DNA of 64,000 nt. Source: Zygnema circumcarinatum SAG 698-1b (taxonomy: Eukaryota; Plantae; Zygnematophyceae). Below the pieces are notes generated by a model, which ran no database searches, was not told where the DNA came from, and was given only the letters and a program-made list of their open reading frames with translations. The stretch spans positions 124,001 through 188,000 of the forward strand of contig CM074815.1 of NCBI GenBank assembly GCA_037447605.1, written 5' to 3'. Shown one piece after another: positions 2,961 to 35,434 of this stretch; the stretch's first letter is position 1, and every line of letters begins with the position of its first letter. The position numbers were made by a program, and so were the translations under genes.

Positions 2961-4452
2961 GCCAAGTTCTCCCTTTGCTTGACTGTTGGATGGGAAAAAA
3001 TCTGTGCTTTCTGGGCTTAGGACGGACTAGAGGGAGGCGGAGATGAACGAGGCTACGAAAGTGCATCGGGATAGGGCGGGAGAGGGAGAGGGAAGGGGAG
3101 AGGGAGGAAAGTAGGGAGAAAATGGGAGGCGAAGAAAGGTAGAGGTGGGAAAGATCGAAGAGGGGAGGGAGAGAGGGAGAAGGGGATAGATTGAGGGATG
3201 AATCTGAGTTGAGACTTTGAATTCGCTACAAACTCTTCCATATTTTCACGATGAGCTGATTTTTCATCATTGAAGTAGAGTGTGATTGTGAACTGAGCTT
3301 TAGTGATTCGATGTATTGACAATTCAGGGAACGTCTTGTTCTGGATGATGTTTGTGGCCAGGTGCGATATATCGCCCCACATGGGCGCGACTCACAATCA
3401 TCACCAGCATTGAAAACTCACCTTTCTACAGAAAGCAGTCTAAGCATGGCCTGCGTCTCTCTCCCTCACTCTCGCTCTCACATACACAATCGAACTCGTG
3501 TGTTAGAAAAAACACATAGGTGTGCTCTGTACATACAGTATGCCATATATCTACCATTAAGCTCAATTTTTTAAACTCTTGAGCTTTCTGGAGGGCAGTT
3601 GCTTTCCCCTCTAATTGAATAAATTTGAAAGCGAAATTACAAAGGTAGCTTTCCCTAGTGGAGCATCTGAAATTCGTTTCGTACTGTTTTTATGCTTGAT
3701 CTTCTACTCAAATGTGCCATTCCAACTCAGATCAGCCCAAGCGTTGAACAATCGATTAACCGAATCTATCTAGGCTGTTTGAGAAAATCAAATGACAAGA
3801 AGCAAACATATTTTTATGTAAGGTGCATCTTTTGATCCATTTATTGTCTGCAGGTCACGGCTCTCCGCAGGGAGAGAGGGAAGGGGGCAGAAAAGGAAAT
3901 TGCAAAAAGAGCGGAGAGAGAGAGGGGGTGAAGAGAGGGGAGGGAAAGTGGAGAGAGGGAGAGAGAAAGAGGGGTACAGGGAAAATGGCGGAACCAAGGA
4001 GAGTGCGGGGGAGATCGCAGAGTGAGATAATGGGGTTGGAGGCTGAGGTGAGAGTGAAAGAAATAGGGGTAGAGAGGGAGAGAGAGAGGGGTAGATACTA
4101 TCGCGTAGAGGGATGTGGAAAGGGGGAGGGAGTGTGAAAAAGAGAGACAGCATGCCGTATGTCATAGCATGTTACCAAGATCTCAACCTTCTCTTTATTT
4201 AAAAAAAAAAAAAGATATCAAAAACAGAAATGAAATTCCTTTTCAATCAAACCCCACTCCGCTATTGCCCTGAATTGACCATCGCTTCCCCGCCGCCTCG
4301 CTTGCGACTACTACGGTCTAAAAATGTTAAAAAATCTGCGCGGACTCCGCTCATATTAGAACGCGAACCTTCCTTCCTCTGTACAGCACACTGCAAACTA
4401 TCACTGTATATATAACCTGTCACTGTAAATGTAACTGCAGCGGCGTGTGGCC

Positions 4453-6561
4453 CTACTTCTGCTCGTCCTCTATTTCCAGCCCCTCTGCCGCCAGCAGGTC
4501 CTGCACGAGGAGCTTTCGGGCCGAGTCCTCCGCCCGCCTGCGTACAATGTCGCGCTTCTTCAGCACCAAGTTGTGACGCTTCAAAGTCGTCTCAAAGCTT
4601 TGAAGGCTCGCCTGCCTCTGCCTCTCCATCAGCCGCCTCTCCTCCTCAGGGTCCATCTGAACACACCGCACTCCCAAACATGACAAGATAAGAACATAGG
4701 TCCTAGACGAATGCGAAGGGAAGAGTCCCTCCCTCTCTCCCTCTCTCTCTCTCCGTCCCTCTCCGTCTCTCGCTCGCACTCTCTCGTGTCGGCCTCTCTC
4801 ACCTTGGCTTTGGCAAGGTTCCGTGCGCGCATACTGAGCTCTCTCTGCTGCTGCTCTGCCCAAGCGGAGACTGCGAGGTCGCCTCTCTGCTCAAAGGCTC
4901 TCCGCTTCTTCATCACCCACTCCATCCACGCCTTCGAGGCCTGCGTAAGTGGTCAGTTCTACAGTCAGTTGTACCGTCAACTGACCGCATGTACCGTTAT
5001 ACAGGTACATGCATGGACATGAATAGCCACATCACAAGGGGTTAAATGTACACTACAGGGCATGCGGGTCGATTGCTGCTTGTCAATTGGAGCATGGGCG
5101 AGTCAGACTTAGGTGGTCTGACGGCGGGAGAGGAGGAGGAAAAGGGGGGCGGGAGACTGGGGAAAGCAAGGGCGAGTGGGGAGAAGTAAAGGGGGTAAGG
5201 GAGAGGGAGTGTGGGGAGGGAGGGGGACACGGAAAGGGAAAGGGAGACGAGAGGGAGAGGGTGAGGGAGAGCACCTTCATGGGGTTCTCCCTGTTCTCAA
5301 AGTCATACTTGCGCCTTTCGTCGGAGTCCATAAGCAGTTCGTAGGCAGCCTGCACTTGGATGAACCGCGACTCTGCCGTCTCGCCCTCTGACAGTTCCGT
5401 GCTGCCATCGTACACTGAGCTCCGTTGCACGGAACGGAGCAACAGAGAGAGGGCGTTAAGGAAGTCGAGCGGACCCTCTCAGCTGCTCAGCTGCTGCTGA
5501 TCCGATTCAATAATTCACAGAAGTTTAAATTGCATGACAAGGAAACGTTCAGCATCAATAGTTCGGATGAAATAATGCCAGCAGTGACAAGAAAATAAAC
5601 GAAAAAAACTCAATAAGAGAGAATCAATGCGTGTGATGCTATTTGGGCGGTTATTGGAATTCACCATCTGGGTGAAATCTTTTGGCCATTTTCCGATATG
5701 CAACTTTCACTTCTTCTTCCGTCGCACCGAAACCAAGTTCTGCACAGGAAAGGAAGTTAGGTCAGAGGCAGTTTTTTTTATAGTAATATTTTTTAAAAAT
5801 TGTAAAGGTGAGACTATTATGGTGTTTTAAAATGTCCTTAGGCCTAAACGGAAAACAAAGATCGTGGCTTTGACAGAGAAAACGAAACGAGAAGGAAAAA
5901 AAACGAACGAAGTGGAATTGTGCGAGAGATTGATGAAAAAGTAAGTCACATAATAAAGCTATTTATAACAAAAAAAACTTGATTCTACACTTTTCACTAT
6001 ACTTAATAGAAGAATTGATAACTCACAGTAAAGAATTAAGACCAAGCATGCATTGCATTAAACGCCGAAGTCGGAAGAAATCACACAAACCAATCCTAAC
6101 CTTAAACCTAACCCGCCTCAATTTTAAATGAAAAGGCTTGGCGTGTTCCAAATCCCGATGAATAAATTAGGCACAATGCTTCAATTCGCCGGAACATATC
6201 CGCTCAGTTCCCCCAAAACATGCAATCATAAAGAAATTAAAAAAGGCCAAAACATGGAATACATACCGAGAGTTTCATACGGCGATTTTTCGCTCGTCCA
6301 TTGCGTTGCTTGACAGCGAACCCCCAGCTGTCGCCGTGAGCCACTCCCACGCTGCCAGCTGTCCCGGTACAGTCCTGCGACTCCTCTGCATTCGACACGT
6401 GTCAAGCAGCGGGAGATAGATTGTCTCTCTCTCGTTCTGTCTGATTTTATGCAGGGAATGATTGAATTAGGGTTTGCGCCAAAACTGGGGTTACATGGGC
6501 AACGCCGTAACAGCGGATTTCTTAGCACAATTGACGACCGGGGAAACAGAAAAGAGGTCAT
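4453..6561 (-). CDS. Plastid-type DnaJ (type III J-domain) protein, resembling Arabidopsis At1g77930/DJC65 as recalled
   Basis: Exons 6561-6267, 5739-5665, 5414-5275, 4940-4803, 4656-4453, all phases compatible. Ser/Arg-rich N-terminus, then WTSEKSPYETL|ELGFGATEEEVKVAYRKMAKRFHPD|VYDG...QAAYELLMDSDERRKYD...NPMK|ASKAWMEW...DLLAAEGLE. HPD motif intact. Confidence 0.9.
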
Positions 6562-7384
6562 TTTTGAGAAAAAGTAAGTCTGGCAAAAAAAATGCAATAT
6601 AAATTCTCGGGAATTGAGCCAAAAATCTGTACATTCGGTGAAAAAATGAGACCAATATTAGGGTTTCGCCATGTGGGGGGGGAGATCCGCCTCTCCTTGC
6701 AGGAGAAAGAGAGGCGAGGGGCTAAGCGACACGTGGCGCCAATGAAAGGAATATGGCCAATCAGAGGCGTTCCTGGCACGTGCAAAGCCGCGTGGAGGCC
6801 TCCGATTGGCCACTGCGGTACCTCGTGGCAGGCGGGAGGCCACGCGGGCCGGGACCCGCCCGCGGGAGGGGGCCGGTTGCGGGGCACAAACTGGGGCTCA
6901 AAAGTTTGCAATTGTCTGATGTCACATGACGTCATTAGTGCAGTTACCGACGGTAACCAGGAGCTCACATTTTCCAAATTTCGCCAAACTTCAGCATAGA
7001 ACTCCTGGCTTTCGTTGTACGGTCTGCTTGTCCCCCAAAAGATGAGCGGCTCAGAATGTGCCACGTGTCCTTGTCTCACTTTGCCACGTCACTGAAATCC
7101 GTACTCTCGCTTCCCCCCTTCCCCTCCCCCCTCTCGCTCTGCCCGCCACGTGGCGCGCCTCGCTTCCCGTTGCCACGTGGCTCCCTTCCATCCCGCCACG
7201 TCGACACCGCTCTCAGGTCAACCAGACATCGCCACGTGGCACCATGCTGTTGAATCCTGGCGTCATCAGCCACGTGTCAAGCGCTCCCTCCTTCCCCCCT
7301 TCTCCCTCAGGGAAGCCCTCCGGCAGCCATGGCTGCTGCTGCTGGCGGAGGGTCGCACGCTCGCACCCTCCTCCCTCTTCCGCC
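6562..7384. promoter_or_regulatory. Bidirectional promoter between DnaJ and ABCD with a G-box/ABRE array
   Basis: CACGTG at 6730, 6777, 7062, 7147, 7174, 7233, 7271; further GCCACGTC copies; TGACGTCA near 6928. Confidence 0.6.
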
Positions 7385-10300
7385 ATGGCTGGAGCTTCTG
7401 CTGCCACGTCATCGCCAAGTGCACGTCAGCTCAGCCACGTCAGCTGGGCGTTCCGTGTCACCTTCCAGGGCGGTCGAGCCGCTGCAAACTGCGGGGCTCA
7501 TGGAAACCCTAATTTTGTCCGAAAAGGGAACCTGAATGTGCTCCTTTGTCGCTCGGCGAAGGCGGAGAGAGCGTCTTCGAGGGGGAAGGCAGAATGTGGG
7601 ACAGGGGGGATGCACCGCTGTCCCAATTGTGGACTAGGGGGGTTGAATCTGATTTCCAGGAAGGGGTTGAGGGGAGGACGGAGTCACCGGGAGCGCGCAT
7701 TTGAGTGCAGAGGGAAGCCATGGACCGGCAATGAGTCGCCGTACGAGGCGCTCGGTGCGCACATTTCTACTTTTCTCGTGCTTTTTTTCTTAAGATTTGG
7801 GCAAATGCTTGAAGGAAGGTGCAAACTGATTTAAAACTGGTTTTGGGGGAGAAAAATGCAATGGGGTTGGTTGCAGTGTCGGCAGAAGTTTACTCACTGT
7901 GCATTGTTAACTGCCTTTCCATTCGACGCATACTTCGCCGTTGACTGAATCTGCTGAAACGAAACCGTACTAAATTCTGGCTTAAATTTTCGCTCAGTCA
8001 TTTGTTTACTTTTTAATAAACGTGAAGTTGGTGTTGATGCTTGATTTCAGAAATCGGAGGCGATGCCTCCGAGGAGCAAGTGAAGGCCGCCTATGAGAAA
8101 CTGAAGCAGAATTTGGGCAATGGTGAGGTACTGAGCAACCGATGAAGTTATTGAAAGTAAAAGTAATAAAATGTACTGAAAAACAGACAGGTAGGGAAAG
8201 CGATAAGGGAATCTACACGCCTGATGGTGGGAATCATGTTGTGATTCTCATGTCAAGAACGTACTGTTTCAACCATTCCTTGCGCATGTGCGCTCATGCT
8301 GACATCGTCACAGGACCAATCGGTGCAACAGGGGACGCGGAAAATGCGGACTCGCGAATGTCCCAAGTTGAAGCGGCGTACGAGCTGCTGACAGACGCGG
8401 AGGAGAAAAAGAAATATGATGCCGAACACCCGCAAGACTCCCAAAAGGTGTTTTTTTTCACATGACTCCGATGTGCTTTGTACATGGCATGCATCGCCCT
8501 CATCACCATGACCATGCCCATGACCCTCATGCCTCCATGGCCGGCAAGTGCATGACCCCATGACCCATGACCCATGCATGGGCGCGCGTGCAGACGGGGG
8601 GCGGCGGGTCGGACCTGGGGACGCTGGTCCGGCGGTTCGTCCAGGTGGCGGCGCCCTACTGGCGGTCCCCGGACCGCGCGCAGGCCCGGTCGCGCGCGGC
8701 GGGCGTGTTCGCGCTCACGCTCGCGACCACGGGCGTCAGCGTCGCGTTCAACTTCCTCGGCCGCGACTTCTACAACGCGCTCGCCAGTGCGCGCCAAACC
8801 CGCCACCGCCCGCCGGCATGCATGCATGCATGCAACCCCATGCATGCATGCACCTGCATGCACGCGCCAGAAGATGGGTGCATGCACGGATCTTTGTTGA
8901 GGTCATGAATGGGCTTCGACATGTGTGCGGGCACGATTGCATGCAGAGATCTGCGGATGCATGGATGTATGCATGGTGCAGGCATGTTTTTGTGGCTAGA
9001 TAAATGCATTGCATGGGTGTAAGGTATGTATCTGTGTGCATGCATGAATGAGATGTATCTTCTCATCGCAAGCATACTTGTAAGCTCAAAAACAAAAATT
9101 GTCCTTGTTAATTTTGTCACCTCTCCCTCTCTGTCACTCACACACTCTCTCTCTCTCTCTCTCTTAAGTCTCTTTGGTCCTCCATTTCTTTCGTCATCAT
9201 GAAGCTGATGTTATTGAGCTCGGTTTTCAGGCAAGGATGAGGAGGCCTTTTTCCGACAGCTCCTCTACTACTTGGCGGCTTTTGTGGGAGGCATTCCGGT
9301 ACAGCCACCGCTTCAATCTCTCTCTCTCTCTCTCACTCTCTCGCTCGCTCTCCCCCCCTCTCCCTTCCCCTTGCCACCCTCGCTCTCTTTCCATCAGTCG
9401 CAAGCCTACCGCCCATTGGTTACTTTAACTCCAACTGACTCGAAACTGAACGGCACCATGTAACGCCATCGCCACTGGAGTTCTATGCAGGTTTTTGTTC
9501 TCCGTGATTTCTCGCGTGACACGTTGGCTCTCCGTTGGCGAGCATGGATGACCTCCCGCTACATGGACCGTTACTTCCAACATAGAACCTTCTACAGCAT
9601 CCAGTCCCAGTCCCTCATAGACAATCCTGACCAGCGAATAGTCGACGATTTGAACGCGTTTACGGGCACAGCTCTGGCCTTCTCTTTGGCTCTGTTTAAC
9701 GCCACCATTGACCTCATCTCCTTTAGCGGAATCCTGTACGGCATCTACCCTCCCCTGTTTGCTCTCCTTGTGGTCTACTCCTTGGGAGGAACAGCGATCA
9801 GTGTCGCCCTTGGAAAGGTGGGTGTTCGTTTTTTCAAATGTCTTGCTAAAGCCTAACCCTTAAGAGACTGAAAAAAGATTCGAAATGTAAATAATTAAAT
9901 AAGAAGCCCTTCCAAACGTGATGAAAACCATAAGCTCTCTCCACTCTCGATTTCACTTTTTCCATCAAAATTGTCCCCTTTTTCTTCACGTTTCCTGTTT
10001 GCTTTTCCATTGGGCAGAATCTGGTGGCTATAAACTTTTTGCAAGAAAAGAGAGAGGCGGATTTTCGGTACGGCTTGGTCCGAGTGCGCGAAAATGCGGA
10101 ATCCATCGCTTTTTACGGCGGGGAAAAGTCAGAAATTCAGCTTCTACTGCAGCGATTTAAGCTATCGTTTGAAAATTACACGGCAAGCTTGATTCCCATT
10201 CATTCATTATTCGACCCTTTCCTCTCTTCTAATCCACCATTTTCTTCATGCCGTAGCGACCAATGACCCCCTTATTTCTTATTTTTTGGGTTTTTCTCTG

Positions 10301-13300
10301 CAGCAACTGTTGTTAAGTACGCGAAATCTGGAATTTTTCACATCCTCATATCGGTACCTAATTCAGCTACTCCCGGCGGCGGTAGTGGCGCCGCTTTATT
10401 TCTCGGGGAAAATCGAGTTTGGGGTTATAAACCAGTCCTTTTCTGCATTCAATCACGTGTTGAGCGATTTCTCGATTATTGTGTACCAATTTCAAGCCCT
10501 AAGCACCTTTTCTGCTGTGGTCGATCGATTAGGTACTACAAAACCCATTCATACTTTCCAGCTTAATCTCCTTTCCCCCTCCTCCCNNNNNNNNNNTCCC
10601 CCTCCCTCCCCTGTGTACACTAGGTAGAAATCACTGACTTATGTTAGTCTATATAACTGCAGGAGAGTTTAATGATATCCTCGATAATGTGCCGGGCACT
10701 GCGGCCGATAAGGTGACGAAAGAAGATGGGTCTGAGACGGAAAAGACTTCAAAGGAGGCTGCGCCGATAGTCGCCCTCATTGATATTCCGGTTTTGAAAA
10801 GAAAGGAAAACTTAGAAAATGAGGTTACATTTTTGCAAGAAATGGGCCATAACGGAACGGAAACAGAGAATATTCCACTCTTAGAGATTCAAGACTTGAC
10901 GCTATTTACGCCCCAATATTCGCTCGCTCTTGTCAACGAACTCAATTTAACCGTACGAAAGGGGGAGCATCTATTGGTGAGTTGATTCAAAGGTGGTCAG
11001 AAATGTAAATTAGACTACCATTAGTGGATTAGTCAACTTCTCTTTAGGCTTAAGGTTGAAAGGGAAGGGTTGAAGTCGGGTTGCTTGAGGGCTCTCATTT
11101 TGCTTAGCCTTTGTTTGTTTTAGCTCATGTCCTCCTCCCCATTCCACTTCGTCTCTCTCCCATCGCTTCTCGTCTCTCGTTTTCCCCTGCCCCCCTCTCT
11201 TTCTCCTCCGCTCCCTCTGCCTTTTCTCCTTCCTCCCCGTTCCCCCTCCCCACGTTGCCTCTCCCCTTCATCTTTCCCTGCCCTTTCACTTTCCTCTCCC
11301 TTCCCCCCTCCCCCTCTCCTCTTCCTCCCTCTCCCTCCCCCCATCCCGTCTCTCCCTCTTGTCTTCTCCTCCCTCGTCCCCTTCCCTTTCCTCCAATCTC
11401 TCTCTTCCTTCACCCCTTCCCCTTTTCCCTCTCGTCTATCACTCGCCCCCTTATCTCCTCCTCCCCCTTCCCCCTCTCCCGCCTTCCCCTTCCTCTCATT
11501 TATCGCTTTTAGGGTTTTTAGGGTTCCCCTCTACCCCCTTCCGTCTCTCTCATCTCACCCTGCCCCGCCCCTCTCCCTGCTCCCCTCTCCCGCTCTCACT
11601 CTCTTCCACTCCCTCCCCTCCCTCTTACCCCTCCCTCCCCCTCTCCCATAGATCATGGGTCCAAGTGGCAGCGGCAAAACGTCCCTTCTTCGAGCCATCG
11701 CCGGCCTGTGGCGCAGCGGAGAAGGGAGCATAAAGCGCTATATTGAGGCTCCGAGTTCAACTTTACCCAACGGATCCACTCATGGCCCGGGATCCACCGC
11801 AGAGCTCAAGAGCGAACCCAATGGGGCAGTGACAAGTGTCGAGCACTCGGGTGCGGATGAACAGACCGACCTGTCGGAGGGAGGGGCCATATTCTTTGTT
11901 CCACAACGTCCGTACATGGTGCTGGGCGACCTTCGGCAACAGCTGCTCTACCCGACGTGGAGCGACGAGATGCTGCCACGTGGCAGCACTGAGGAGGAAG
12001 TCAATGGTGAGCGATAATTATCGATTTGATTGGGCTTCCACGCCAACCAAAACTTCTCCCCCCCCCCCCCCCTTTCCCTCCTCCTTTCCCCTCCTTTTGT
12101 AATTCGAAATTTCTTCACCCCCTTGTCATCAGGATTCCCCGACATATCGCCCTCTGCGTCCGCACCTTCAACATCCCCAGATGCAACAGACATCAACGGC
12201 GCATCATCCACCGGTGGATCTGACGGATCAGGCAATCAATGCCACCAACCCAACGCCCCGGGCAGGGCGGCGACCGGCGACGCTGTGGCAGCGTCGCCCA
12301 CAGTGCGCTCCGCCGCGTGGCGGCACGGAGAAGGCGGGCTGAGGCAGCCGTGGGAGTGGGCGGGCGTGCTGTGGATGACGGGCAGGCGCGATGGCGGTGG
12401 CAGGCTCCTGCTCTCAAGGCCGCTGCTCGCGCTAATGGACGAGGCCACAAGCGCACTGGACGAGGACAATGAGGTGTGGGGGGGGGGAGGGGGAGGGGGA
12501 GGGAGGGAGGGAGGGAGGGAGGGAGGGAGGGAGGGAAGGGAGGAGGGGGAGGGAGGGAGGGAGGGAGGGAGGGAGGGAGGGAGGGAGGGAGGGAGGGAGG
12601 GAGGGGAGGGGCGAGGGGAGGGAGGGAATGGGAAGGGGAGGGAGGGAGAGGGAGGGGAAGGGGAGGGAGAGAGGGAGGGAGGGGAGGGGGAGGGAGGGAG
12701 GGAGGGAGGAAGGAGGGAGAGGGAGGGGAGGAGAGGGAGGGAGGGAGAGGGAGGGAGAAGGAGAGGGAGGGAGGGAGGGAGGGAGGGAGGGAAGGGGAAG
12801 GGAGGGGAAGGGAGGGGGAGGGAGGGAGGGGAAGGGAGGAAGGGTAAGAAGGGAGGGGAGGGAAGGGAGGAAAGGCAGGAAGAGAAAGAAGGGAGGGAGT
12901 GGGGGGGGAGTGGGAGGGGGGAGGGAAGGGGGTGAGGGGAGGGAGGGAGGTGAGGAGGGGGCTGGGCGGAGGGGCGGAGAGGGCGGAGAGGGCGGGAAGG
13001 GGCGAGAGGGCGAGAAGGGCGGAGAGGGCGGAGAGGGCGAGGAGGGCGGAGGGCGGAGGGGCGAGAGGGCGAGAGGGGCGGAGAGGGCGAGAAGGGGGAG
13101 GGGCAAAGGGCGGAGGGGCGGAGAAGGGCAAAAGGGCGAAGGACAGAGAGGCGAGAGGGCGGGGAGGGCGGAGGGCGGGAGGGGCGGAGAGGGCGGAGAG
13201 GGCGGAGAGGGCGGAGAGGCGGAGGGGCCGGAGAAGGGCCGAGAAGAGGCGAGAGGGGCGGAGAGGGCGAGGAGGGCCGGAGGGGCCGGGAAGAGGCGGA

Positions 13301-13748
13301 GAGGCGGAGGGGCGAGAGGGCGAGAGGGGCGAAGAAGGGCGGAGGGGCGAGAAGGGCCGAGAAGGGCGGAGGGGCGAAGGGGCGAGAAGAGGCAAAAGGG
13401 CGAAGGGGCAAGAAGGGCAGACGGAAGGGCGAGAAGAGGGCAAAGAGGGCGGAGGGGCGAGAGGACGGAGGGGCGGAGGGGCGAGAAGAGACAGAGGGCG
13501 GAGGGGGCGAGAAGGACGGAGGGACGGAGGGACGGAGGGGGCCTCAAAGTAACCTTCTGCTTTTTGCTTTGTTCTTTTCCACGTCTCAGGCGTACCTGTA
13601 CGAGCTGGTGGAGGCTGCGGGAGTGACGGTTGTGAGCGTTGGCCACAGGAGCACTCTCAAGCGTTTCCACCAAAACATTTTGCACCTGCAGCCCGCCGAG
13701 GGCGGGCTGAAAGGGAAAAATTGGGCCTTTTTCCCTACGGAGACTTAG
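7385..13748 (+). CDS. ABCD2: Plastid ABCD2-type half ABC transporter with N-terminal transit peptide and J-like domain
   Basis: Exons 7385-7754, 8051-8122, 8314-8447, 8594-8786, 9231-9298, 9491-9817, 10018-10182 (GC donor), 10304-10532, 10663-10976, 11652-12006, 12133-12473, 13590-13748. TMD motifs AFNFLGRDFYNAL, DNPDQRIVDDL, EADFRYGLVRVRENAESIAFYGG; Walker A GPSGSGKT; Walker B ALMDEATSALD; H-loop SVGHR. Signature region is garbled (see findings). An alternative in-frame ATG lies at 7244. Confidence 0.9.
12478..13541. repeat. G-rich intronic tandem repeats (GGGA tetramer, then ~9-10 nt GAGGGCGGA-like units)
   Basis: Visible periodicity filling the last ABCD intron; source of the long Gly/Arg/Glu and Pro/Ser/Leu ORFs. 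Confidence 0.9.
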
Positions 13749-18146: not shown

Positions 18147-18959
18147 GCCACGTCTCTCAGCGCCACGTCAGGTGGTCCCCGCTCGGCCGTACCGCCCTTG
18201 TCCGCACTCGGCGGGCGCTTTTTCCAAGGCGGCAGCGCGGCAGATATTTTCACTTTGTCGGTTTCTGGGACACGTGGCGGTCATCCCGCGCAGCGCGGGC
18301 TCAGGGCCGTCTGATATTTTGAGGGCGGAAGATATTTGCGACTTTTTCGGGGCCAGCGCGGCGCGGATGCAGAGCATCTCAGCCGTCGAATGGAGAAATC
18401 GGACGGCTGTGGAGCGCGCTGAGGATCTTGGGCCTTGGAAGGGTGGGAACAAGTTTGATATTATTAGTGGATAGTTTTTTTTGGGCAGATGATTTTTTGT
18501 TCTGGAACTTTGGGCAGGGGACCGAAATGTTTTACGTTTTCGCCTGTCTACTGTAAACTTGGAGGTGACAGAAGCAACGCGATTGGTGGGTCTGGATATT
18601 TTTCACCCTATCGAAACATTGATTATCTGCCCGATGTGAAGGTATTTTCTGCCAGGATGGGATTGAGGGCTTGAAAAGCGGCAGAAGCGCTGTTATCGAT
18701 GCCGTACGGTTGAAGTCAAGTTGGTCAAGCAGTACTGCCACGTCGGATCCCACGCTGGATAATATCGCCCGCTTTTGCCAGCGTGGCAGGAAAAGCGCGC
18801 TCAAACACTCGCCTCGTGCGAGCTCCTGCGTCGGTTCGGCCCACTCACATGCCGCCACGTGGCGTAATGGATATTGACCGGCACGCCTGCCCAGTGCTGA
18901 CACTTGATGGGCGGCCGCGATATTTACACAAAACGACAAGAATGTGCCCGAGATATTTT
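18147..18959 (-). promoter_or_regulatory. Evening elements plus ABRE-like/G-box motifs upstream of the COR27-like gene
   Basis: AAAATATCT on the minus strand at 18242-18250 and 18951-18959; AAATATCT at 18330-18337; GCCACGTC at 18147 and 18162; CACGTG at 18271 and 18856. Confidence 0.55.
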
Positions 18960-29429: not shown

Positions 29430-29784
29430 GGGGTAGGGCAGATTCGGGGTTTCAGATCAGGATCAAGATAGTGAAGGAATTGAATACCGAAGGAGGCGAA
29501 CAGGACAGCTTCAACTTGCGGAATTTATAAAGTAAAAATTCTGCGCAAGTGAGGGGTCGCGTTCACTGTTTCGTTGACGTTGACTCCACAAGGGGCCGCC
29601 ACGTGACAAGTCTGACACGTGTCGATCTGCCTGCAAGCCACGTGTACCGTATGTGAGGAATCTAAACACTCAACCCTAACCCTAACGACAAAGCCCAAGC
29701 CCTGACCTAAAGAACCTCGTCCCTTAGCTAGAGTATCAGCATGCGCGAGTGCAGAAAGAAAACAGAAAGGGAGCTCTTCCAGCC

Positions 29785-31144
29785 ATGGCGGAGGGCGGCG
29801 GAGTCCCCGAGGAGACCGTGGAATGCGCCGTGATTGGCGCTGGCGTGGTGGGGCTCGCTGTAGCGCGCCACGTGGCGGAGGGCGGGCGGGAGGTGGTGCT
29901 GCTAGAGGCGGCGGGCGCCATAGGGACCGCAACGAGCTCCCGCAACAGCGAGGTCGTCCATGGCGGCCTCTACTACCCGCCGGGGAGCCTCAAGGTTTCG
30001 GCCTCATACTGGAGGGTGGAGTGAGGCCTTAGGAGGGGAGTCTTTTCGATGGGGTATGGAGCAGTATGCATATTGTTTTATTTGTTTATTTGTTTGTTGT
30101 TTAGTTGTTTTTGGTCGGGAGATCTTTAGGGTTGGTGATGGGTCGAAGGTGAGAGCTGTCATTGATTTGGACAGTGGGCCAAACCCTTTACTTTGGGTGT
30201 TGGGCAAGGAGCCCGAAAGGTATCTCTGCAGGGCTCGGATCTGCGTTTGCTTCAATTCTATTGTTGAATCGAAGTTCAATCTCATCGAAAGTAATTGAAG
30301 TTAGACTGAATCTGGAATTCAATCCATCACATTGTGCTGTTCCCTTGCGCAGGCGAAGCTGTGTGTGGAAGGAAGGCGCGAACTGTATCGCTTCTGTGAA
30401 GAGCATGGAGTTGGTTACAAGAAAACGGGCAAACTCATCGTAGCCACAAGCCCCAAGGAGCTTCACAAACTCGACGACCTCATGGTATGCATCTCCTCAT
30501 CATCGCACTTAGCACTTTCCAACATGTATGCACTTCGTCCAAGCTTTCAAACATCGAAATCATTTCTAAACCAGCACATTATGTAAACCAGTCTAGAGGC
30601 AATCAGAGGGAGAGAGGGGGGAAGGGGGAGAGGGAGAGACAGAGACAGAGAGGGAAACGGAGAGAGAGAGAGAGGGAGAAATGGGTAGGGGGGCGGGAAC
30701 GCGTGGAGGGGGGAGGGGGACGGCCCACGGGAGGGGAGAGGCTAAGTGGGAGCGAGATGGGGAGGAAGTGGGAGGCGGGGGCCTTGGGCTGCGGGACGGG
30801 GACAGGAGGAGGGGGAGAGGGGGAGGGGAGCGGGAAAGGGGGGGGGGGGGGGTGGTAGGGGGAGAGGGAGGAAGGAGCGACGGGATGGCAACGGGGGGGG
30901 GGAGGAGGGAGGGGGGAGGGGGGGGGGGGCGGAGAGAGAGAGTCCTAAAGCCTGACAGTGAACCAAGGAGAGGCAGTGGCGGGCCTGCAGACGCGAGGGC
31001 TCAAAAACGGAGTGGAGGGTTTGAGGATGGTGACGAGGGAGGAGGCTGCGGAGCTCGAGCCGAATGTTGTCTGTGAGAGAGCCCTGCTCTCTCCTGAGAC
31101 CGGAATTGTGGACAGCCATGCGCTTATGCTGGGATATCTGGTAT

Positions 31145-34379: not shown

Positions 34380-35434
34380 ATGGCGGCGAGCTCGCAGCTG
34401 GAGATTCTCGACCAAGTCAACGTCCCCTCCTCGAATCACGACCCGCCACGTGGCGCGACTCCCCAGAGCAGCCCCGTGCTGCACCGCCAGCAGACAATGC
34501 GCGCCGCCAGTGGCGGCGTTGGCCGCAGGGAAAACGACGACGACGACGACGAGGACGACGACGACGACGGCAATGATGATGATGATCACGAGGACGACCT
34601 TGACTTTGACCTGAACCGCTTCCGGCGCACCCTGACGGAGATCCACTACTTGAAGAAGGAGGAGGACGAGTTCTATGCGCGCGAGCGGCGCCGCTTCCTC
34701 CGCTCCGCCACGCTCGTGCAGACGTCGGCCCCGCCCCTGAACCCTAAACCCGCCGCCAAAACCCTCAAAGCCTCCAGCAAAACCTTCCGCTCCTTCAAGG
34801 CCCTCAAGGCCACGTCACAGCCCCCCCCGATGAAGTCAGCAGCAGCAGCAGCAGCAGGGACACGTGGCAGCCAGGGGCGCGGACACGTGGCAACGGAAAG
34901 GCGGTTCGGGTGGCGACAGGTGGCGCTCCCTGAGAGGCTGAAGGAGAGCCTCCACAATGACGTGGCAGCAGCAGCCGGAGGAGGGTCGAGGCTGGAAAGC
35001 TTCCGGAAGCTTCGCGCGATTCCCCTCTTCATCCCCCCCGGGGCCGCGTCCTCCGCCGACGAAAGCCCCCAAACCTTCAGGACCAGCCGCTCCGCGCCGG
35101 CCAATGCGGCGCTGCCACCTGGCGCGGGGAGGGAGCAGCCGGGGGGTGCGGCCAGCGACGGGGGCTATCGGACGGCGGTCAAAGCGGGAGGAGGGGGTGG
35201 GGGCGCAGCCACAGGCACAGGCTCGAAAAATGGAGGATTAGGGTTAGGGTTAGGGGGGGGGGTAGCGGCGGGGGGGAGGAAGAAGGCGGCGGCGCTGAAC
35301 ACTTCTCCGGCGGATGATGATGAGGAGCCTTTGAGGGGCCCCTTTCAACGGAGCAAGACGGAGAGGATCGGAGGAGGTGGGGGAGGAGGAGGAGGAGGAG
35401 GAGGAGGAGGAGGAGGAATATTGAAGTCCCCCCC

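Follow-up and report, generated by a model that had tools for sequence, protein, structure and literature searches.

The stretch analyzed here, referred to as the window, comprises 64,000 nucleotides of the genome of the zygnematophyte Zygnema circumcarinatum SAG 698-1b (GenBank assembly GCA_037447605.1, contig CM074815.1, positions 124,001 to 188,000), and coordinates below are positions within it. Two of its genes stand head to head. On the minus strand lies a DnaJ gene (4453-6856) with five exons that encode 283 residues, as read from spliced contigs and their translation. On the plus strand lies an orthologue of the plant plastid gene ABCD2 (7131-13748), which specifies a half-size ABC transporter and whose first three exons encode a presequence followed by a J-like domain. 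A sequence-only reading of this DNA had proposed that the transporter gene is a chimera, created by local inverted duplication of its DnaJ neighbor and now sharing a promoter with it.

The fused ABCD2 gene and its transcripts

Transcript evidence came from contigs assembled from four public runs of the same organism (X1 to X4, from three studies), which were placed on positions 4420 to 10400; as the contigs are spliced, they derive from RNA. The junction 8447/8594, which joins the last J-like exon to the ABCD2 body, was seen in all four runs, and a single 3,181-nt contig from X1 starts at 7131 and carries all seven ABCD2 junctions through 10182/10304. Over the mapped stretch, there are no base differences or gaps between contigs and genome. 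The J-like exons and the ABCD2 body are one transcribed unit, and the notion of the J-like exons as a separate unit was not borne out.

Exon 1 (7131-7754), at whose first base the X1 contig begins, holds the 5′ untranslated region (UTR), the presequence, and helix I of the J-like domain and is joined to exon 2 at 7754/8051. Exon 2 (8051-8122), with joints in three runs, encodes helix II and carries LGN where J-domains have HPD. Exon 3 (8332-8447) encodes helices III and IV and follows over a joint, 8122/8332, present in X1, X3, and X4. The fusion intron (8448-8593) is a 146-nt GT-AG intron of phase 0 at the site of ancestral ABCD2 intron 1, and the exon behind it (8594-8786) is the first of the ancestral ABCD2 body, opens at the conserved GSDL, and is the counterpart of exon 2 in Marchantia and Klebsormidium. 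The phase-0 join onto the ABCD2 body had been predicted from the DNA and is present both there and in the RNA of the four runs. Spliced contigs also confirm intron 7755-8050. The earlier exon coordinates held for 7385-7754, for 8051-8122, and for the end at 8447; the start of exon 3 had been placed at 8314 and has to be moved to 8332. All three runs that cover intron 2 place its last base at 8331, the residues PIGATG fall outside the observed mRNA, and the exon is six codons (18 nt) shorter, with frame and phase unchanged.

On the ABCD2 side, the 5′ ends of contigs fall at 7131-7173. Two in-frame ATGs, at 7385 and 7244, are candidate start codons, and use of the latter would lengthen the protein by 47 residues. 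An out-of-frame ATG in strong context at 7329 opens a 68-codon open reading frame that overlaps the 7385 start. Exons 5 to 7 (9231-9298, 9491-9817, and 10018-10182), delimited by contig joints, encode part of the membrane domain. The intron that follows (10183-10303) has GC-AG borders, and its joints occur in all four runs. The remaining exons (10304-10532, 10663-10976, 11652-~12010, at least 12336-12473, and ~13584-13748, with the stop codon) form a homology model of the region 10304-13748, built by tblastn and splice-site search on P0151, the second fused protein described below. In this modeling, no in-frame splice combination was found between ~12010 and ~12336.

Homology of the J-like domain to the adjacent DnaJ gene

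BLASTP of the two N termini, run with composition correction off, gave 37% identity over 156 residues (E = 2e-25). When the comparison was confined to the J region, the Smith-Waterman score was 186 against a shuffle mean of 28 (standard deviation, 5; z of ~30), a value reached by none of 2,000 shuffles. The three intron positions and phases (1, 1, and 0) are identical in the two genes, and both encode, ahead of helix I, a motif of C, four residues, W, four residues, and SPYE. A residual inverted repeat of 40 nt (6265-6304 with 7717-7756; 73% complementary) spans the exon 1 donor sites of both genes; nucleotide similarity is nearly erased (67% over 91 nt). The peptide pairs on which the sequence-only reading had relied (in one of them, 16 of 25 residues are identical), the GT-AG borders, the shared phases, and the lysine that ends both third exons as the 11th residue from the Y of YD are all there, as is the replacement of HPD by LGN. 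The DnaJ profile scan that the reading had called for also recognized the domain, with exon 3 alone matching Pfam DnaJ (PF00226) at 21.8 bits (E = 2e-4; profile positions 37 to 63). Compared with the J-like domain of P0151, J-domains of solved structure score 20 to 31 bits, whereas the neighboring DnaJ scores 81 bits. On these comparisons, the J-like part clearly reads as a paralogue of the 5′ exons of the adjacent DnaJ gene.

HPD has given way to LGN in the window and to DQD in P0151, while the neighboring DnaJ keeps it. Since the tripeptide is absent, we speak of a J-like rather than a functional J-domain. Helix II has five basic residues in DnaJ, three in the window J-like domain, and two in that of P0151, and the window J-like copy has a shortened loop behind helix II.

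Identity of the transporter body

ABCD2 exon 6 matches the ABC_membrane_2 domain (PF06472; E = 2.5e-18), and an exhaustive search with this exon returned streptophyte ABCD-type proteins as its best matches. A word-indexed search seeded with the Mesotaenium orthologue led to proteins named “ABC transporter D family member 2, chloroplastic” across land plants. The membrane domain of the window gene is 79 to 82% identical to plant ABCD2 proteins and 90% identical to P0151, and the gene nests within streptophyte ABCD2 in a maximum likelihood tree. Plant plastid ABCD2 (Arabidopsis At1g54350 and its orthologues) has in common with the gene described here the PF06472 membrane domain, the ABC ATPase domain, and the intron before GSDL; the listed orthologues, P0151 excepted, differ in having a plain presequence exon and in lacking a J-domain. 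The transit peptide of AtABCD2 sends cargo to the chloroplast inner envelope (bioRxiv 10.1101/2024.02.14.580295).

The ATPase domain of the window gene has a Walker A motif, a Q-loop, a Walker B motif, and an H-loop. The ABC signature (C-loop) region at 12372-12405 on the plus strand is anomalous: it reads LWMTGRRDGGGR, in which the signature is unrecognizable in the assembly, where five orthologues from Klebsormidium to Marchantia carry LSLGEQQRLA[FL]AR (Spirogloea has L for F). The +1 frame over the same positions reads AMAVA and partly restores the expected residues, which suggests compensating indels. No intact copy of the signature was found elsewhere in the 64-kb window, and none of four sampled 31-mers of 12345-12435 was found in any public run; for comparison, six runs contain 38 to 75% of sampled words from 7300-9300. 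We suspect that the broken C-loop reflects assembly indels.

The window also holds a (CT)n microsatellite of more than 1 kb (864-1977) and a purine-rich GGA/GAG repeat of about 1.1 kb (12480-13560) that fills the last ABCD2 intron. These long repeats, together with five 10-N gaps, indicate that the assembly is fragile in repeats.

A second fused gene and the age of the fusion

The orthologue survey that had been suggested as a means of dating the fusion uncovered a second fused gene. Its product, P0151 (967 residues), occurs on transcript contigs of two Logan-assembled runs of another organism, SRR8128908 and SRR8128903; among the 120 ABCD2 orthologues listed, it alone has a precomputed DnaJ domain. 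PF00226 is absent from the other 119, in agreement with the expectation that ABCD2 of land plants has no J-domain. The N terminus of P0151 matches Pfam DnaJ at 41.8 bits (cutoff, 27.8) over profile positions 2 to 63, and the protein enters the ABCD2 body at the junction found in the window, where K is followed by T-G-G and then by GSDL. In its J-like domain, P0151 shares 50% identity with the J-like domain of the window and 46% with the window DnaJ; KPW, EEQV, EKL, and YDA are common to both J-like domains and missing from DnaJ. We favor a single origin of the two J-like domains mostly because the junction is identical.

In a maximum likelihood tree of 33 ABCD2 sequences, the window gene and P0151 are sisters (Shimodaira-Hasegawa-like approximate likelihood ratio test [SH-aLRT] support, 97) and belong to a clade (SH-aLRT, 93) that also contains Mesotaenium, Spirogloea, and a third lineage and corresponds to Zygnematophyceae. 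The annotated Mesotaenium and Spirogloea ABCD2 proteins lack the J-like part. A DnaJ neighbor is absent at all four ABCD2 loci inspected (Klebsormidium, Marchantia, and the assemblies GCA_948144035.1 and GCA_947470075.1, both from the ABCD2 clade of the window), and tblastn detected no J-like exons within 10 kb upstream of ABCD2 at the same four loci. The two assemblies have a Kelch-repeat gene upstream of ABCD2 on the same strand, and the annotated protein P0001 (1,269 residues), which merges a Kelch-repeat gene with ABCD2, is probably a gene-model error. Word-indexed searches with the J-like region of P0151 for further fused proteins or for the DnaJ family returned P0151 itself and two candidates, neither of which passed. 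Furthermore, a metagenome scan with residues 100 to 420 of P0151 yielded 80 loci, mostly bacterial ABCD-like genes, with J-like sequence in none.

The proportion of synonymous differences (pS) between the window gene and P0151 is 0.81 to 0.89. As synonymous sites are saturated, the ratio of nonsynonymous to synonymous rates that had been proposed as a check on the J-like exons was not computable, and we used raw pS and the raw proportion of nonsynonymous differences (pN) instead. pN is 0.066 in the membrane domain, 0.30 in the J-like domain, and 0.565 in the presequence, which places the J-like domain between the other two. Over a long divergence, the J-like domain has been under far weaker constraint than the transporter core but clearly stronger constraint than the adjacent presequence, and saturation of synonymous sites combined with the slower change of the J-like domain relative to the presequence implies that the domain has long been kept by selection, in a sub-lineage that falls with Zygnematophyceae in the ABCD2 tree. 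By these comparisons the fusion is old, shared with a second species, and lineage-specific.

The DnaJ gene and the shared promoter

DnaJ exon 1 (6267-6856, minus strand) contains the coding sequence for the presequence and helix I (6267-6561) and a 5′ UTR that extends to ~6856, the contigs stopping at 6804-6856. Exon 2 (5665-5739) encodes helix II and the intact HPD, with joints 5414/5665 and 5739/6267 in four runs, and exon 3 (5275-5414) encodes helices III and IV, ends in phase 0 on a lysine, and alone matches Pfam DnaJ at 27.8 bits (E = 2.7e-6). Exon 4 (4803-4940) is bounded by joints 4656/4803, again in four runs, and 4940/5275. The last coding exon (4453-4656) ends with the stop codon at 4453-4455, and the transcript runs 3′ beyond 4420. 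The RNA-derived contigs define the introns as 4657-4802, 4941-5274, 5415-5664, and 5740-6266. An extra intron with CT..AC borders (6386-6632, minus strand) occurs in X4 only, at about one-fifth of the main depth; its removal takes out the start codon along with the first 58 codons of DnaJ, and the longest open reading frame left begins within helix II. ESM Atlas look-ups returned generic DnaJ clusters only and no match for the C-terminal exon. In its size of 283 residues, its presequence, and its long loop after HPD, this parent gene product presumably resembles the small chloroplast J-proteins J8, J11, and J20, J20 in particular, a putative likeness that serves as a lead.

About 270 bp separate the 5′ ends of the two head-to-head transcripts (~6856 and 7131), in line with the claim of a common promoter; the shared divergent promoter region (6857-7130) lies between contig ends at 6804-6856 and 7131-7173. 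The motif GCCACGT, similar to a G-box or abscisic acid-responsive element, occurs 51 times in the window against 3.2 matches expected, often within the palindrome GCCACGTGGC, and 13 of these matches form a dense cluster at 7060-7440, covering the ABCD2 promoter, 5′ UTR, and start of the coding sequence. Further clusters lie near 18147-18860, 29598-29870, and 34445-34960. The transcript 5′ end from the P0151 organism (L001:1-120) carries CACGTGGC and GCCACGTGG.

A second motif, the telobox AAACCCTAA, occurs 13 times in the window (0.46 expected), including at 6467, 6658 (minus strand), and 7504 (plus strand). It is sense-oriented in the first coding exons of both DnaJ and ABCD2, where it is translated as N-P-N. 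A sense telobox-like AACCCT (N-P) lies about 86 to 119 nt past the ATG in DnaJ, the window fusion, and P0151.

Origin of the fusion and alternative explanations

Exon 1 of Marchantia ABCD2 has 387 nt (129 codons) followed by GT, and its exon 2 begins one residue ahead of GSDF. An intron at the corresponding site of the Klebsormidium gene likewise follows a complete codon, and the fusion intron of the window thus occupies exactly the position of a phase-0 intron of the ancestral gene. DnaJ intron 3 is likewise of phase 0, with 510 nt of coding sequence ahead of it. As exon shuffling would have it, donor and acceptor introns share phase 0, and the parent gene is identifiable and adjacent. We propose that a local inverted duplication copied the 5′ part of DnaJ, that the phase-0 donor of the copied intron 3 became joined to the acceptor of ABCD2 exon 2, likewise of phase 0, and that the ancestral transit-peptide exon was discarded and replaced by the copy of DnaJ exons 1 to 3; these events would have brought both genes under one divergent, G-box-rich promoter. 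Paralogy, matching introns, and the head-to-head inverted repeat uphold the earlier proposal of a chimera made by local inverted duplication, now refined to replacement of exon 1 at a preexisting intron. The further claim that ABCD2 captured a transit peptide stands insofar as it follows from gene structure: the new presequence is attributed to the DnaJ copy because exon 1 is a single exon with a homologous 3′ end.

Several observations weigh against parts of this account. Upstream of the J region, in the presumed transit peptides, similarity between the two genes was not significant (266 of 2,000 shuffles reached the score), and it follows that the origin of the presequence is not established by sequence similarity alone and depends on gene structure. 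(A weak match of the window presequence to the N terminus of another ABCD2 protein, P0017, at E = 0.017 to 0.04 in a small database, was taken as chance.) Closeness to the neighbor was gauged solely against shuffles and solved J-domains. The three J sequences are nearly equidistant, and identities of 46 to 50% are, as distances, no proof of a single J-like origin. P0151 is known from transcripts only, and the AlphaFold single-sequence model of its residues 100 to 215 was poor (predicted local distance difference test score, 53), with only the helix pattern usable. Finally, the broken C-loop at 12372-12405, if real, would call transport activity into question.

Among other explanations, one accepts the fusion as real and treats the J-like domain as a passenger: what was gained would be a presequence and a promoter, and the fold would be an inert spacer or an aid to import or folding, with no partner. 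The domain does change about 4.5 times faster than the membrane domain, it has lost HPD in two ways (LGN and DQD), and in the window copy it has a shortened loop behind helix II. Against this, it changes at about half the rate of the presequence over a saturated divergence, the core residues of helices I to IV are kept in both species, and the P0151 copy still scores above the Pfam DnaJ threshold; we regard a passenger as rather unlikely. In a second alternative, a remote J-protein gene supplied the J-like exons in a different way, and DnaJ lies next to them by coincidence or came there later. The near loss of nucleotide similarity (67% over 91 nt) would fit, and a closer paralogue elsewhere in the genome could exist in the unsampled parent family. 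Such a source would, however, have to account for three common intron positions and phases, the C-x4-W-x4-SPYE motif ahead of helix I in both genes, and the mirrored arrangement of the genes, with what is left of an inverted repeat at the exon 1 donors, and generic J-domains are much less similar; we hold it to be very improbable.

The data already contradict the view that there are two distinct genes, one with the J-like exons and one for ABCD2, or that their junction is an artifact of assembly or annotation. Unspliced contigs span intron 1 in X2, and rare isoforms drop out of assembled contigs, but the canonical GT-AG junction 8447/8594 occurs in four runs from three studies, the mapped region shows no differences from the genome, and two runs of another organism contain an independent fused transcript, so that we give this possibility practically no weight. 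We consider our overall explanation, in which the fusion arose by local duplication and exon replacement, was retained over a long time, and serves a predicted docking or regulatory role, to be probable.

Predicted role of the J-like domain

The presequences of DnaJ, the window fusion, and P0151 are all basic and acid-poor in composition (15 to 19% K+R and 3 to 5% D+E) and, as expected, fit organelle targeting. With six membrane helices in each half, an ABCD transporter has its N terminus and its ATPase domain on one side of the membrane. The J-like domain would therefore share that side, presumably the stromal face of the inner envelope, with the ATPase, and only ~15 residues separate it from the first conserved amphipathic segment. 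Loss of HPD abolishes the stimulation of Hsp70 by J-domains. Because HPD is missing and helix II has fewer basic residues, the J-like domain is probably unable to activate Hsp70 itself, and it is most likely a protein-binding or regulatory module.

At a membrane transport machine, the HPD-less J-like protein Pam16 pairs with a true J-protein. As with Pam16 (Tim16) and Pam18 (Tim14) of the mitochondrial import motor, the window encodes a J-like domain and a J-protein, here as paralogues on one divergent promoter; it differs in that the sequence relation to that pair goes no further than the J fold, the J-like domain belongs to the same polypeptide as an ABC transporter, and the pairing is putative. 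By analogy, the domain might dock the paralogous plastid J-protein and so bring plastid Hsp70 to an ABC transporter of the inner envelope, a specific scenario that we think quite unlikely to be the right one. Sec63, which is among the solved-structure matches, is likewise a transport-machine membrane protein with an integral J-domain; it retains HPD and activates BiP, whereas HPD is lost here. A membrane protein in its own right, CJD1 (Chloroplast J-like Domain 1, At1g08640) is not fused to a transporter. It resembles the present case, by description, as a J-like-domain protein of chloroplast membranes and is listed among acyl-lipid metabolism proteins (PMC13381928).

Implications

The combination of a J-like domain with an ABC transporter unites two well-known parts and appears to be undescribed, as full-text literature searches yielded no relevant description of it. 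The locus offers a clean and datable case of gene birth by exon shuffling, in which one can still see the parent gene, the reused intron, and the shared promoter, and it comes from a lineage that belongs to the algal group closest to land plants. If docking of the J-protein proves true, a zygnematophyte lineage would have invented a chaperone-coupled ABC transporter, an analogue of Pam16/Pam18 at TIM23. To our knowledge, neither a substrate nor a role is known for plastid ABCD2, and a conserved, predicted protein-binding module together with a coexpressed candidate partner may provide a route to the interactors of this transporter.

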